A stretch of DNA of 49,487 nucleotides from Octopus bimaculoides. Lineage: Eukaryota. The DNA lies in contig NC_068998.1 of assembly GCF_001194135.2 (NCBI RefSeq), positions 17,640,290 through 17,689,776 of the forward strand, in the 5' to 3' direction. A program made the position numbers and the translations under genes. Numbering within the stretch: the stretch's first letter is position 1; each line of letters opens with the position of its first letter. Positions 7,146-47,292 of this stretch are shown here, in pieces. Under the pieces are notes generated by a model. It ran no database searches and was not told the DNA's origin. It was given only the letters and a program-made list of their open reading frames with translations.

Positions 7146-7293
7146 ATGCATCGCTATTTGGCTATGGATATTCCTCAAACATTTTCATGTTTTCTTTTCT
7201 TCACATTATTGCCCTCAATTTCTGCACAGTTTCCAAGAGTATGTGCGGAAAATGCCACCACTCCTGATGGAATTTGTTGTCCAACAAGACCAG
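7146..7293 (+). CDS. Exon 1 of membrane-bound tyrosinase/TRP family gene (signal peptide and start of Cys-rich domain)
   Basis: Translates MHRYLAMDIPQTFSCFLFFTLLPSISA-QFPRVCAENATTPDGICCPTRP. A hydrophobic signal peptide is followed by the QFPRxC...CCP N-terminus typical of TYRP1/DCT. Donor CAG|GTAAAA at 7294, phase 1. The alternative start ATG at 7164 is equally plausible. Confidence 0.9.
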
Positions 7294-7944
7294 GTAAAAC
7301 CCCCTCTTTCTTTTCCGTTTTCTATTTCTGGTATAAACTTTCTTTCAAGCATCTTTACTTTTATGTTTCTTGTGAAATGTTTCCCCTATTCTGGCACAAA
7401 AAAGAACCCAACTTATCTATCATTTAACAAAAACAGTCATCGACTTAGCATCTTGCTAAGCTATTTCTTTCTTTTTATATGAGTAGCAATGTGCGTCACA
7501 GTATTTACTTCCGTCTCTTCTTCCCCTTCTAGTTCAAATTTCATTATTATCTTCTGTTATTACATTCTTCTTGGGTCAATAAGGTAAGTACGAATATGGT
7601 AGCGGGACCGATGGACTGTAAGAAATTCAGTATTTGCGTATAATTCACCTTCTACAAATGATGGCCTTGTGTCTCGTCAAAATAAATCAATAGGACTTAT
7701 AGATATGGTTGCATTTATAGCAATACTGATAGTCTTAAACAGTTCGTTAATAACGGATAAGCAAAACATTTGAAATATGTGTCAATTTTTCCGTGAACTA
7801 TGTTAGTTTAAGTGAATTTAAATAAGATTTTTAATTTCGATTATAACTTCGATAGTTATCCCTCGTCCAAACTTCAAAGTTTTCTAAATTTGGCAAGACG
7901 ATATTGATGAAGGCGATAATAATGATAATAATAATAATAATAAT

Positions 7945-8157
7945 CCTTTCTACTATAGGCATAAGGCCTGAAATTTGAGGAAAGGGATTAAGTCGGTTAC
8001 ATCGACCTCAGTGCGTAACTGGTACTTTATCTAATCGACTCTGAAAGGATGAACGGCAAAGTTGAACTCGGCAGAATTTGAACACAGAACGTAGCGACAG
8101 ACGAAATACCGCTAAGCATTTCGCCCTGCGTGCTAACGATTCTGCCAGCTCGCCACC
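7945..8157 (-). mobile_element. SINE family A
   Basis: Full-length reverse copy, with an (ATT)n tail at about 7920-7944. Confidence 0.9.
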
Positions 8158-8262
8158 TTATGATGATGATGATGATGATGATAATAATAATAATAGTTGT
8201 TGTTGCTACAGCTGCTGTTGTTGTTGTTGTTGTTGTTGTCAAAGAGACAAACTACTGTTGGA

Positions 8263-8445
8263 AAAAATGCTTAGTGGCATTTTTTTTCAGGTTCATTACA
8301 TTTGAGATTCAAATCTCACCGAAATAAACTTTACCTTATGTCCTTTCGGGATGGATAAAATAAAGTACCAGTCAAGTACTGGGGTCGATGTAATCGACTT
8401 CCCAGCACCACGCTTTCCTCAAAATTGCTGGCCTTGAGCCAAAAT
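8263..8445 (+). mobile_element. SINE family A, 5'-truncated
   Basis: AAAATGCTTAGTGGCATT...GAGATTCAAATCTC...GGGGTCGATGTAATCGACT...GGCCTTGAGCCAAAA, followed by an (AAT)n tract. Confidence 0.85.
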
Positions 8446-9832
8446 TAATAATAATAATAATAATAATAATAATAACAATAATGATATTATTATTATTATT
8501 ATTATTAGTTCTAGTAGTAGTAGTAGTAGTAGTAGTAGTAGTATAAATCTTCAGTATTAATACTTTTGTTATTAAAGATACGTTGTTGTTGACGACGCCA
8601 TGTACATCCATCTTGCTTGTTTTGAGGGTAAAAAAAGGCGGGTGTGCAACATTTTATCATTCATGTTAATTGAACTTTTCCATTTATTGAACTCAACTCT
8701 CCACGATTTCCTCATATGAAGAAATCGAAAAATATATCAATAACAATTTTTATTTTTTTATTTTTTTAATACTAACTGTGTCTTTCCTTTTTTTTTTTTT
8801 TTTTTTTTTTTGTCCTTTTAATTTAGACTAATTAGAACCATGATGTCGTTAGCTTTCGCGCAGCTGAAATCATATTCCTTTTATCAGTAGGACTGCGGAC
8901 GGCAAAACTAGTAACGACTCGGACTTAAATGTTGTGAAGCATTTAGTTATGTCTCTTTAAGTTCTGGCTTCAAATCTCCGAAACCTGTCTGGGTCTTTCT
9001 TCTCTTCGGGATTGACATAACTAAAAGCAGTTTTGTACTGGTGTCAGTGTAATTGTGTGTACTCTTCCGCCAAATTGTGTGGTTTGTGTCCAAGTTTGAA
9101 ATTATAATTTCTGTATTTAACCTAATTCACATTATCTGCAATGCCATTATCGTATCTTAGTGCCTTCCTATATATATACACCCATATATATATATATATA
9201 TATATATATATATNNNNNNNNNNNNNNNNNNNNNNNNNNNNNNNNNNNNNNNNNNNNNNNNNNNNNNNNNNNNNNNNNNNNNNNNNNNNNNNNNNNNNNN
9301 NNNNNNNNNNNNNNNNNNNNNNNNNNNNNNNNNNNNNNNNNNNNNNNNNNNNNNNNNNNNNNNNNNNNNNNNNNNNNNNNNNNNNNNNNNNNNNNNNNNN
9401 NNNNNNNNNNNNNNNNNNNNNNNNNNNNNNNNNNNNNNNNNNNNNNNNNNNNNNNNNNNNNNNNNNNNNNNNNNNNNNNNNNNNNNNNNNNNNNNNNNNN
9501 NNNNNNNNNNNNNNNNNNNNNNNNNNNNNNNNNNNNNNNNNNNNNNNNNNNNNNNNNNNNNNNNNNNNNNNNNNNNNNNNNNNNNNNNNNNNNNNNNNNN
9601 NNNNNNNNNNNNNNNNNNNNNNNNNNNNNNNNNNNNNNNNNNNNNNNNNNNNNNNNNNNNNNNNNNNNNNNNNNNNNNNNNNNNNNNNNNNNNNNNNNNN
9701 NNNNNNNNNNNNNNNNNNNNNNNNNNNNNNNNNNNNNNNNNNNNNNNNNNNNNNNNNNNNNNNNNNNNNNNNNNNNNNNNNNNNNNNNNNNNNNNNNNNN
9801 NNNNNNNNNNNNTGTGTGTGTGTGTGTGTGTA

Positions 9833-45089: not shown

Positions 45090-45800
45090 TGGCTATGTCG
45101 TAAGAAGTTTGTTTCCCAATCACATGGTTCTGAGTTCAGTCCCGTTCTTGACAAGTGTTTTCTACAATAATCTTGGGCTGATCAAACCCTTGTGGAAGAC
45201 AAAAACTGAAAGATGGCCCATCGTACACACACACACACACACACACACACACACACACACACACACACACACACACACACACACACGTGTGAGTATATNN
45301 NNNNNNNNTGATTAGCGGTATTTCGTCTGCCCTACGTTCTGAGTTCAAATTCCGCCGAGGTCGACTTTGCCTTTCATCCTTTCGGAAACGATTAAATAAA
45401 TACCCGTTACGCACTGGGGTCGATATAATCGACTTAATCCGTTTGTCTGTCCTTGTTTGTCTCCTCTGTGTGTAGCCCCTTGTGGGCAGTAAAGAAATAA
45501 CACACACACACACACACACACACACACACACACACACACACACACACACACACACACACACGTGTGAGTATATGTGTGTGTGTATATGTGCGTATATGTG
45601 TGTTTATATGTGTGTATATGTGTGTGTATATGTGACAGAGAGAACGAGCGTCTCTATGTCTGTGTTTGTGTCCCACCACCGCTTGACTAGGATTTGAAAA
45701 AATTAAGTACAGGTGTCGATTCGTTCGACTAAAATTCTTCAAAGGGTTGTCCCAGCTTGGCTCCTGTCTAATGACTGAAACGAGAAAAAGATAAAAAGAA
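45090..45800 (+). mobile_element. SINE family B with a family A copy (45310-45499) nested in its internal microsatellite
   Basis: Order: B 5' module 45090-45225, (CA)n, short gap, family A copy ending GGGCAGTAAAGAAAT, (CA)n, B 3' module 45665-45800. Confidence 0.7.
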
Positions 45801-45929
45801 CCCGATCCAAGCAATCACTGCTGCTACTGCTACTGTTCGGTTGATAGATTGACACCTCTCAGTCACAACGGATTCTTTCTCTCTCTCCAGAAGCAAATTT
45901 ATACATACATACATACATACATACATATA

Positions 45930-46310
45930 CAGGATGCAATGGGTAAATTGTCACCATTTTATGCGCATTGTTTATTTTTGATTTTGTCAACTATGCAGTA
46001 CGATAGAGTCAGTTGGGCACCTTCTATGAGAAAAACAGCACCATGACACAATTCACTCTGCCAGAAATTTGGAAACGACATGCTGTACTGCTTGGCATTC
46101 GCGCCGGATGCTCCACTACGAACATTTCAGAGTGTTTGGGTGTCAATCTGAGGACAGTGCAGAGGATTCAGAAAAAAGTTGGATGTGTCTAATGGTGATT
46201 ATGAAGGTGCAACAGCTCGGAAATCTTGTTCTGATCGTTCTGATAAGAAAAGTACTCCTGAATTTGTTGGTGAAATCCAGGCCATGATTGACAACGATCC
46301 CTCCAAGATA
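45930..46310 (+). mobile_element. maT-like transposon 5' end (TIR and N-terminal DNA-binding region)
   Basis: TA|CAGGATGCAATGGGTAAATTGTCACC resembles the reverse complement of the end at 10556-10583. ATG 46043 begins MTQFTLPEIWKRHAVLLGIRAG, with ...LGVNLRTVQRIQKKL in a shifted frame. Confidence 0.65.
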
Positions 46311-47056
46311 GACGCGGAGGTGACAGTAGTAGTGGTGGTGGTAGTGGTGGTGGTGGTGGTGGTGGTAGCCGAGGCGATCAGGGATGACGTTGATAGTAAG
46401 CGATGTGAAAGACAGTGGTGATGATGGTGGAGGGGAAGGAGGCGAAGTCAAAGGTATTGATGGTGGTGGCGTCAGATGTCTGAATGATGTGTGTATGGCA
46501 GTTGTGATGGCGAAGGTGGTGGTACTGGTGATGGTGATGGTTGAATACAATCAACATAAAGAGAGAGAGAGAGAAAGAAAGAGATTAGATAGAAAATAAT
46601 CGTACTGATCTCCGAATGGGAAGACAAACAGTGTTGTTTATCATGCAGTTTTGCAATAGTTCCAAGTCGACAAATTACATCATTGTTTTGATGAAAATTG
46701 TTCATTGCTTGAGAAATATTAGTCTAATAAAATTTAATATGTACTCAATGCATGAAGTGTAATTGTTGGGTCTAAGGTCCAATGAAGTGCCGTCCACAGG
46801 AACTAGTATTATATTATATATGCAATTATTTCGTATATATACTGTGTGTGTGTGTGTGTGTGTAAGAGTAATCACCTGTCATCTATTTTCTGTTGTCTGC
46901 CAGGTTCTCTGAACGAGTGTAGGAAGCCATATTTTTGTTTCATACAAAAGTTTTAATACAATATTTATCAGATGAACATAGGTAGAAAAAGGAATGCGTT
47001 TTCTTCATTTTAACTTATTTTAACTTTTTTCTTTCGTTTTTTTTTTTTTTTTGCAG

Positions 47057-47292
47057 AAACTTCGCTCAGTCCAGTTTGGATTATTGTTATTGTCGAAGCT
47101 GGTCTTTTACTGCTTCTGCTGGCAATCATCATCGAATTGGCACGCACACGTAATCACCGTTCCCAAGCAAGACAACTGAGTTCCACGTCCGTGCATAACA
47201 ACGTCACCGCTGACACAGCTGATGAAGAACAACCAATATTCCAACCAGGAAACCCAACTTACAGAACCTATAATGCTGCCGAGAATTCATAG
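47057..47292 (+). CDS. Exon 5 (terminal) of tyrosinase/TRP family gene: TM helix and cytoplasmic tail
   Basis: Long poly-T tract then TTGCAG|AA; phase 1 fits exon 4. Encodes KTSLSPVWIIVIVEAGLLLLLLAIIIELARTRNHRSQARQLSSTSVHNNVTADTADEEQPIFQPGNPTYRTYNAAENS, ending at TAG 47290-47292. The 541-aa total matches vertebrate family members. Confidence 0.88.

Follow-up and report, generated by a model that had tools for sequence, protein, structure and literature searches.

The gamma subclass of tyrosinases is defined by a signal peptide, a region rich in cysteine and a transmembrane (TM) helix, and has been listed for sponges, flatworms, annelids, hemichordates, cephalochordates, urochordates and vertebrates, with molluscs recorded as having alpha-type proteins only (Aguilera 2013, PMC3658974). 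A 2024 survey likewise gave molluscs, annelids and brachiopods alpha tyrosinases and flatworms gamma tyrosinases (PMC11667028). Here we describe a gamma-type tyrosinase gene at positions 7146-47292 of a 49,487-nucleotide stretch of the Octopus bimaculoides genome (the window). An earlier note, made from the sequence alone, had recognized a membrane-bound tyrosinase of vertebrate architecture and held that its cysteine-rich region plus TM helix defines the chordate melanosomal enzymes. That claim is wrong, as the layout marks the metazoan gamma subclass (PMC3658974), and in our searches a nemertean, a priapulid and two chitons proved to have it as well; the accompanying point, that it is not the layout described from molluscs, was a fair one (PMC3658974, PMC11667028).

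Molluscan members of this subclass have been seen before without comment, in the cloning of two chiton genes and in the gene models of an argonaut. Las-tyrosinase A and B of the chiton Leptochiton asellus were cloned in 2015 (Vocking et al.), and every r-opsin+ photoreceptor cell of the larvae expresses the two genes; the larval shielding pigment is an ommochrome, and tyrosinase is found in the photoreceptor cells rather than the pigment cells (PMC4689004). In the genome paper of Argonauta argo, eight of the nine tyrosinase models are alpha and one is left unclassified in the text, and the tree figure carries the labels alpha, beta and gamma. The octopus gene, annotated as 'tyrosinase' by NCBI and with a chiton orthologue already cloned, is not a discovery and is an ordinary, under-recognised member of a known family; the new point is limited to the statement in published surveys that molluscs lack the gamma subfamily. 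Together with its cephalopod orthologues and the chiton genes, it renders the alpha-only statement for molluscs (Aguilera 2013; PMC11667028) out of date and places the membrane-bound subclass in the ancestor of the molluscs, with retention in at least two classes, the cephalopods and the chitons.

The locus is a real, intact five-exon gene, apparently single-copy, whose product belongs to the gamma subclass. From conserved features of this product we consider it likely to be a type-I membrane glycoprotein acting as a lumen-facing oxidase of a lysosome-related organelle, in which the activity, the metal and the organelle are predicted.

Gene structure and transcription

Five plus-strand exons, read directly from the window sequence, join into a coding sequence (CDS) of 1626 nt, that is, 541 codons and a stop, and every exon boundary has a GT donor and a polypyrimidine-AG acceptor, with intron phases 1/0/0/1. 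The exons and the features that they carry are as follows (a slash marks the exon boundary; CuA and CuB are the two metal sites).

7146-7293, + strand: exon 1, 148 nt, ending in phase 1, donor CAG/gtaaaa; holds the start codon, the signal peptide (residues 1-27, encoded at 7146-7226) and the first part of the mature chain, QFPRVCAENATTPDGICCPTRP, with Cys33, 44 and 45
23910-24871, + strand: exon 2, 962 nt, acceptor ttctaatttcag/G, donor AATCAG/gttggt, Pfam PF00264 match (E 1e-18); also holds Cys254/257/286/293 and Glu352
23910-24118, + strand, in exon 2: remainder of the Cys-rich, EGF-like region, Cys55 to Cys119
24314-24421, + strand, in exon 2: CuA histidines His185/211/220
24863-24868, + strand, in exon 2: first CuB histidine, as His368-Asn369
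37289-37423, + strand: exon 3, 135 nt, acceptor ttttctcag/G, donor GAG/gtaagt; CuB His372 (37292-37294), gate residue Leu382, Phe391, CuB His395 (37361-37363) and Asp399
40719-40863, + strand: exon 4, 145 nt, ending in phase 1, acceptor ttttttgacag/C, donor CCGA/gtaagt; C-terminal part of the catalytic domain, PVFEAPPGHGRMANMVPFFPV...GYDYDDLVVEDVP, aligned with 'APIGHNRQYNMVPFWP...LGYTYE' of TYRP1
47057-47292, + strand: exon 5, 236 nt including the TAG stop, acceptor t(16)gcag/A; TM helix of residues ~467-493 (47065-47145), then the cytoplasmic tail with EEQPIF (47224-47241) and NPTY (47251-47262)
7294-47056, + strand: span of the four introns, 16.6, 12.4, 3.3 and 6.2 kb as assembled

The spliced product is the NCBI protein 'tyrosinase [Octopus bimaculoides]' (P0001) at 100% identity over 100% of its length, and the NCBI gene on CM046618.1 (GCA_001194135.2) spans 40,147 nt, exactly positions 7146-47292. 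The same protein identity and gene span confirm that the genome is that of a cephalopod, as the earlier note had supposed, and its suspicion that the gene might already be auto-annotated was justified. The NCBI annotation calls no other gene between 7294 and 47056, and none within 10 kb on either side of the tyrosinase gene.

No transcript with the exact sequence of the O. bimaculoides protein is on record, and the evidence for splicing therefore rests on a cuttlefish orthologue: a Sepia esculenta mRNA (L001) is collinear with CDS nt 79-1626 as one block, across all four junctions. From this collinearity it follows that exon 4 is spliced to exon 5 and that the intron gaps conceal no further exon; a failure of precisely this last junction had been named by the earlier note as a way in which its five-exon model could fall, and the model stands. 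The short linker between GYDY and the TM helix had raised the possibility of a further exon in the intron 4 gaps, but the same mRNA rules this out. Two alternative splice sites were also rejected, a donor at 24875, which breaks the frame, and an acceptor at 40725, which would remove two residues that the NCBI model has.

The Sepia orthologue (P0003, with 69% identity to that of the octopus) is carried by ~4-kb contigs without introns, assembled by Logan from 93 RNA-seq data blocks; one of the runs, SRR25097173, is whole-hatchling RNA-seq of the cuttlefish, and the mRNA has a 5' untranslated region of ~670 nt. A second orthologue (P0004) is also transcript-borne, and a protein of Argonauta hians is 82% identical to that of the octopus. 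Between octopus and Sepia the ratio of nonsynonymous to synonymous differences per site (pN/pS) is 0.26, with synonymous sites saturated, and the gene is therefore under purifying selection.

These observations bear on whether the locus could be a pseudogene, an assembly artefact or a misread secreted alpha-type tyrosinase of the molluscan kind. Such doubts might be nourished by the repeat-rich introns and by the nine runs of N in the window, six of which lie inside the gene, intron 1 holding three of them, intron 2 one and intron 4 two. The six are, however, 1749-7180 nt from the nearest exon edge, most of them bordered by microsatellites of the (TA)n, (TG)n or (CA)n type; since no exon is interrupted by a gap, frame continuity is not at issue and the uncertainty is confined to intron lengths. 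The intact open reading frame (ORF), the canonical splice sites, the position of gaps and repeats outside the exons, the pN/pS of 0.26 and the full-length orthologous mRNAs all speak against a defective or artefactual gene, and hemocyanin units match the protein at the copper sites only, without any of the N-terminal cysteines of its Cys-rich module. We regard this explanation as refuted and give it next to no credence.

The second intron appears to recur in other species. Truncated gene models of other spiralians, cephalopod and chiton models among them (P0005, P0044, P0050 and P0051), read through into non-homologous sequence directly after the first CuB histidine (..HNx/V..), which implies an intron at the same codon, and the phase-0 intron between the first and second CuB histidines (24871/37289 in the window) therefore appears to be kept among spiralian gamma genes. 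The model of the chiton Liolophura starts with 'MCGG...', which corresponds to the start of octopus exon 2, and its first exon has probably been missed by annotation.

Architecture and position in the tyrosinase family

Every feature that the earlier note had listed is present, namely the signal peptide, the QFPRVC start, ten cysteines, both metal sites, a TM helix and a tail, and the architecture is indeed of the TYR/TYRP1/DCT type. A hydrophobic leader of residues 1-27, a predicted signal peptide, ends in ...SISA/QFPRVC, and the first residue of the mature chain, Gln28 (QFPR), stands opposite residue 1 of the crystal chain of human TYRP1 in the alignment. The ten N-terminal cysteines (33, 44, 45, 55, 63, 96, 98, 107, 110 and 119) match those of human TYRP1; in the 83-sequence alignment on which residue conservation was scored, each is kept in 95-100% of 80 gamma-type sequences and none in hemocyanin units. 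Cys254/257/286/293 are likewise common to the octopus protein and TYRP1. The Pfam Tyrosinase domain (PF00264) scores 68.9 bits over the exon-2 part and 42.3 bits over the exon-3 part, above the cut-off of 22.6. A single TM helix spans residues ~467-493, where the Kyte-Doolittle average over 19 residues reaches its maximum of 3.0 at 471-489 and AlphaFold places a helix at 469-496.

Type-3 copper proteins share the signature H1-(n)-H2-(8)-H3 at CuA and H1-(3)-H2-(n)-H3 at CuB, with a phenylalanine four residues before each third histidine and an aspartate four after that of CuB (Aguilera 2013, PMC3658974). All of it is found in the octopus protein, which keeps the six metal-ligand histidines (CuA His185/211/220, CuB His368/372/395) in this spacing, together with Phe216, Phe391 and Asp399. 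Human TYRP1 is the best solved structure by sequence (E 1e-75 over residues 28-455) and the top Foldseek match to the AlphaFold model (E 1e-29, TM 0.78), followed there by Bacillus megaterium tyrosinase, while molluscan hemocyanins and bacterial tyrosinases align with the octopus protein around the copper sites only.

When 1.84 billion representative proteins were searched exhaustively with phmmer, 3191 matched at E <=0.001, 131 of them at E <=1e-30, and the best 150 of the 3191 were all gamma-type but for one hemocyanin. Homology searches of the kind that the earlier note had proposed recovered the identical NCBI protein and cephalopod, chiton and nemertean gamma relatives. After the cephalopod cluster (69% identity) the next match is a nemertean protein at 41%, and the neighbours of the cluster, of which 30 of the 150 listed representatives were named, include flatworms, Priapulus, hemichordates, fish TYR, a frog tyrosinase-like protein, sponges and the chiton Liolophura sinensis (P0217). 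Another chiton protein, Leptochiton asellus 'tyrosinase B' (P0229), is full-length and has a signal peptide, a QFPIAC start, the Cys-rich region, a TM helix and a tail. A profile search of a 5.8-billion-protein database, of which the word prefilter limits the reach, returned only sequences that other searches had given, and a search with the chiton protein as the query gave chiton-like matches only, which does not establish that gastropods, bivalves or Nautilus lack the gene. Since one cluster at 50% identity covers all cephalopod matches, this is apparently the sole, single-copy gamma gene of the species.

Neighbour-joining (NJ) trees were built from Kimura-corrected distances over 387-419 columns with 300-500 bootstraps; the outgroup, three functional units of hemocyanin P0072, was the sole alpha-type material. 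The octopus protein falls inside the gamma clade and apart from the hemocyanin units. The earlier note had allowed that the protein might instead nest among molluscan alpha-type proteins; for hemocyanin units this is answered, and the secreted molluscan tyrosinases lie outside the scope of the trees. Bootstrap values are 100% for the cephalopods, 100% for the two chitons and 100% for DCT with TYRP1, and cephalopods and chitons group at 61% (46% with one chiton). Vertebrate, hagfish and tunicate (olfactores) TYR, TYRP1 and DCT form a clade at 84-93%, with the cephalopods outside it, and in 0 of 300 replicates did the cephalopods join a subset of this clade. Because the octopus protein branches outside the clade that holds their duplications, the trees support its placement as a gamma-subclass member and pro-orthologue of TYR, TYRP1 and DCT together, which is the relationship that the earlier note had surmised. 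As it is shared with chitons, the gene appears to have been inherited vertically within Mollusca. Nearby in the tree, a frog tyrosinase-like protein (P0035, 742 aa, Eleutherodactylus coqui) heads a gamma clade with P0042, P0048, P0049, P0059 and P0109 that is sister to the TYR/TYRP1/DCT plus tunicate clade, and which may represent a further vertebrate-containing paralogue group.

Compared with the vertebrate family (human TYRP1, PDB 5M8L and 9EY8), the octopus protein has the same domain order of signal peptide, QFPR, ten-Cys region, CuA, CuB and TM helix, followed by a short tail in which ExxP precedes two hydrophobic residues, at 34-36% identity over ~430 residues. It differs in being a member of none of TYR, TYRP1 and DCT, in its gate leucine, in an extra cysteine pair (Cys200/296), in a tail with I-F rather than L-L and an added NPTY, and in having a small exon 1 and a large exon 2. 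The chiton tyrosinases (Leptochiton asellus tyrosinase B, KU193737, and Liolophura sinensis) belong to the same phylum, share the architecture and form the sister group of the cephalopods at the 61% given above, and the Liolophura cluster representative (P0044) shows 42% identity with the octopus protein along the stretch that matches. Their tails, however, carry YxxPhi signals (YARV/YSRV) and acidic runs instead of EEQPIF and NPTY, their gate residue is Ala, residue 354 is Tyr in Leptochiton, and only the chiton genes are known to be expressed in larval photoreceptors.

Other invertebrate gamma proteins (Tubulanus, Priapulus, flatworms, hemichordates, amphioxus and sponges) share the Cys-rich region, the copper sites and mostly the TM helix, at 33-43% identity; the nemertean Tubulanus also shares the extra cysteine pair and, as DETPLV and NPNY, the tail motifs, whereas some flatworm members have lost the TM helix, and amphioxus and Ptychodera have lineage-specific expansions where cephalopods apparently have one copy. 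Molluscan alpha proteins, among them the Illex argentinus ink tyrosinase, the Pinctada shell tyrosinases and hemocyanin units, have in common with the octopus protein the type-3 copper core with its six histidines, Phe-4 and Asp+4, but lack the QFPR start, the ten-Cys module, the TM helix and the tail, and the likeness of hemocyanin is local to the copper sites. The extra pair, Cys200 and Cys296 (24359-24361 and 24647-24649), is present in the four cephalopods, in Tubulanus and in Schistosoma TYR2 but not in deuterostome members, and may form an additional disulfide particular to some spiralian gamma tyrosinases.

Predicted function, sorting and tissue

We propose that the protein goes back to the bilaterian gene from which TYR, TYRP1 and DCT later arose by triplication in the chordate line. 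Its signal peptide would direct entry into the endoplasmic reticulum, where the lumenal part is expected to fold as a binuclear copper domain, built as a four-helix bundle, against which an EGF-like module rich in disulfides is packed, and the single TM helix would anchor the protein with a cytoplasmic tail of ~50 residues carrying the sorting signals. An acidic dileucine-like signal, EEQPIF, together with NPxY/Yxx signals in the tail, could then route it to a post-Golgi lysosome-related organelle, with the active site facing the lumen, where a copper-loaded monophenol/o-diphenol oxidase would turn tyrosine and DOPA into dopaquinone.

With respect to catalysis, the Glu352/Asn369 pair is conserved in the octopus protein, and work on bacterial tyrosinase has linked such a pair to monophenolase activity. 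Position 354 is Phe, as in TYR, where TYRP1 and DCT have Tyr, and the gate residue 382 is Leu in all four cephalopods, compared with Val in TYR, Thr in TYRP1, Ser in DCT, Ala in chitons and Gln in the nemertean. Of the three positions altered in the T391V-R374S-Y362F mutant that makes TYRP1 more TYR-like (PDB 5m8q), two are TYR-like or hydrophobic in the octopus (Phe354 and Leu382). It could nevertheless be argued that the protein is a tyrosinase-related protein in function, that is, a zinc-binding, tautomerase or DHICA-oxidase-like accessory enzyme, as TYRP1 and DCT retain all six histidines and yet are not copper tyrosinases (PMC5855855), and the best sequence and structure match is to TYRP1, though this is the only family member with a solved structure. 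We find this unlikely: the gene split off before TYR and the related proteins diverged, two of the three discriminating residues are not those of TYRP1, and the gene is apparently the only one of its subclass in the species, from which we infer that the octopus protein probably keeps the ancestral oxidase activity.

In the tail of ~50 residues, four cephalopod orthologues share (D/E)EEQPIFxPG(N/D)P(T/S)YxTYNAAE, and EEQPIF fits the pattern [DE]xxP[LIVMF][LIVMF], which is also seen in fish TYR (ERQPLL), fish DCT (EFEPLL), hagfish TYR (ELQPFL), the nemertean Tubulanus (DETPLV) and two further spiralian sequences (EKIPLL and ESTPLL); hemichordates, Priapulus, trematodes and chitons have YxxPhi tails instead. 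The acidic dileucine signal of vertebrate tyrosinase binds AP-3/AP-1 and directs the enzyme to melanosomes, and it is because of this parallel that we infer sorting of the octopus enzyme to an endolysosomal or lysosome-related organelle.

A number of points weigh against our view of the protein as an active enzyme of the gamma subclass in such an organelle. An intact six-His site does not ensure copper binding or tyrosinase activity, as TYRP1 and DCT demonstrate (PMC5855855). The 'placeholder' Val over CuA that is tabulated for the gamma subclass (Table 1, Aguilera 2013) is replaced by Leu382, and the mean pLDDT of the AlphaFold model is only 71, the core being modelled well but residues 26-59 and the tail poorly. 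The octopus tail has I-F where the canonical signal has L-L, and the [DE]xxP motif occurs in only 10 of 47 TM-bearing relatives, many of which have YxxPhi. Deeper protostome nodes are weak, at 10-46%, in trees that are all of the NJ type. As regards the placeholder, the alignment indicates that this gate residue varies inside the gamma subclass and hence is not truly defining.

If the protein is sorted as we suggest, the question is in which cells. As to tissue, the ink gland can be put forward tentatively, photoreceptor or chromatophore cells with a little more doubt, and what remains falls to other tissues. The earlier note had seen in the protein a candidate for ink-gland or retinal pigment; the evidence bearing on this proposal tends against it, as the shielding pigment of molluscan eyes is ommochrome and the one cloned squid ink tyrosinase is alpha-type (PMC4003781).

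For the ink gland, the protein would be a melanosomal tyrosinase anchored in vesicles derived from the trans-Golgi network (TGN) and bound for premelanosomes, like vertebrate TYR. In a model of the Sepia ink gland, tyrosinase arrives on TGN vesicles, and the membranes of these vesicles expose its catalytic sites to the matrix of the melanosome (PMC4052311), with which a membrane enzyme of type I would agree. The TYR-like active-site residues and the melanosome-type tail motif also speak for this reading; moreover, the gene is kept in octopods and decapodiforms, all ink makers, and is transcribed in whole cuttlefish hatchlings, ink sac included. On the other hand, the sole squid ink tyrosinase that has been cloned and purified, from Illex argentinus, is of the alpha subclass (PMC4003781), tyrosinase is not among the recovered proteins highlighted in the octopus ink proteome paper, and chitons own an orthologue but no ink gland, so that ink cannot be the ancestral role. 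We thus treat the ink gland as possible rather than probable, and it is doubtful whether, in its more specific form, the gamma tyrosinase starts eumelanin synthesis in ink-gland melanosomes and arrives there by the same tail-signal and adaptor route as vertebrate TYR. If it were true, cephalopod and vertebrate melanosomes would use orthologous enzymes and a sorting logic inherited from the bilaterian ancestor, and the resemblance between these organelles would be deep homology and not convergence. The gene offers a concrete single-copy candidate for asking whether ink and vertebrate melanosomes share their enzyme and trafficking ancestry, and as CRISPR is workable in some squid the question is a feasible one.

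The chiton data point elsewhere, to photoreceptors, to other neural or sensory cells with low-level melanin or quinone, or to chromatophore pigment cells. Las-tyrosinase B (P0229) and its paralogue are expressed in the larval photoreceptors as described above (PMC4689004), and in a head cell atlas of Loligo vulgaris a 'tyrosinase' is co-expressed with TDO in the chromatophore cluster (PMC9839350). That paper does not, however, specify the tyrosinase paralogue (PMC9839350), the pigments of the cephalopod eye and chromatophores are ommochromes, for which tyrosinase is not needed, and in the chiton study the cells with expression contained hardly any visible pigment (PMC4689004). This placement, too, strikes us as rather doubtful.

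Yet another role is suggested by the flatworms, as Schistosoma tyrosinase 2 and a Fasciola tyrosinase are among the nearest protostome relatives in the NJ tree. Trematode tyrosinases of this kind act in eggshell hardening, and by analogy the cephalopod protein might serve in the quinone tanning (sclerotisation) of a secreted structure such as the egg capsule. Neither the Schistosoma nor the Fasciola protein, however, has the C-terminal TM helix or the tail, while the TM helix and sorting tail of cephalopods are strongly conserved and point to an intracellular, membrane-bound role; because it is the eggshell-tanning relatives that have lost the helix, we consider secreted tanning improbable for the cephalopod protein.

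Repeats and duplications in the introns and flanks

The introns hold microsatellites, repeats resembling short interspersed elements (SINEs) and transposon fragments. The SINE-like repeat is ~200 bp long and dispersed in at least 10 copies, in both orientations and at 72-89% identity, and it translates to a recurring '...SNSAEVDFAFHPFG...' frame. One copy begins 89 nt past exon 4, and none touches an exon. The copies lie at the following positions.

5676-5890, SINE-like repeat
7916-8195, SINE-like repeat
11391-11617, SINE-like repeat
15142-15631, SINE-like repeat
31358-31551, SINE-like repeat
39581-39778, SINE-like repeat
40952-41171, SINE-like repeat
41718-41931, SINE-like repeat
45309-45561, SINE-like repeat
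48868-49148, SINE-like repeat

ORF fragments of apparently decayed transposons are found in the introns at 9918-10124 (+), 29727-29963 (-), 32837-33115 (+), 25760-26083 (-) and 46007-46189 (+). By eye these include Tc1/mariner-like transposase pieces, one of which abuts the gap at 29964, and reverse-transcriptase-like pieces; Pfam scans of the intronic and flanking ORFs gave nothing but a sub-threshold HTH_23 match at 46007-46189, and these ORFs look like decayed transposon fragments. Long trinucleotide or low-complexity tracts, which read as poly-T, poly-N or poly-Q according to frame, occur at 37538-37750, 8078-8330, 13377-13811 and 46290-46420, and one such tract of ~210 nt starts ~115 nt past the exon 3 donor. 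Finally, intron 4 contains a direct duplicate of 354 bp at 96% identity (42347-42698 and 43793-44146), the second copy of which starts 3 nt past the end of the assembly gap at 43742-43790; either the sequence was recently duplicated in tandem or the assembly has produced an artefact at this gap.

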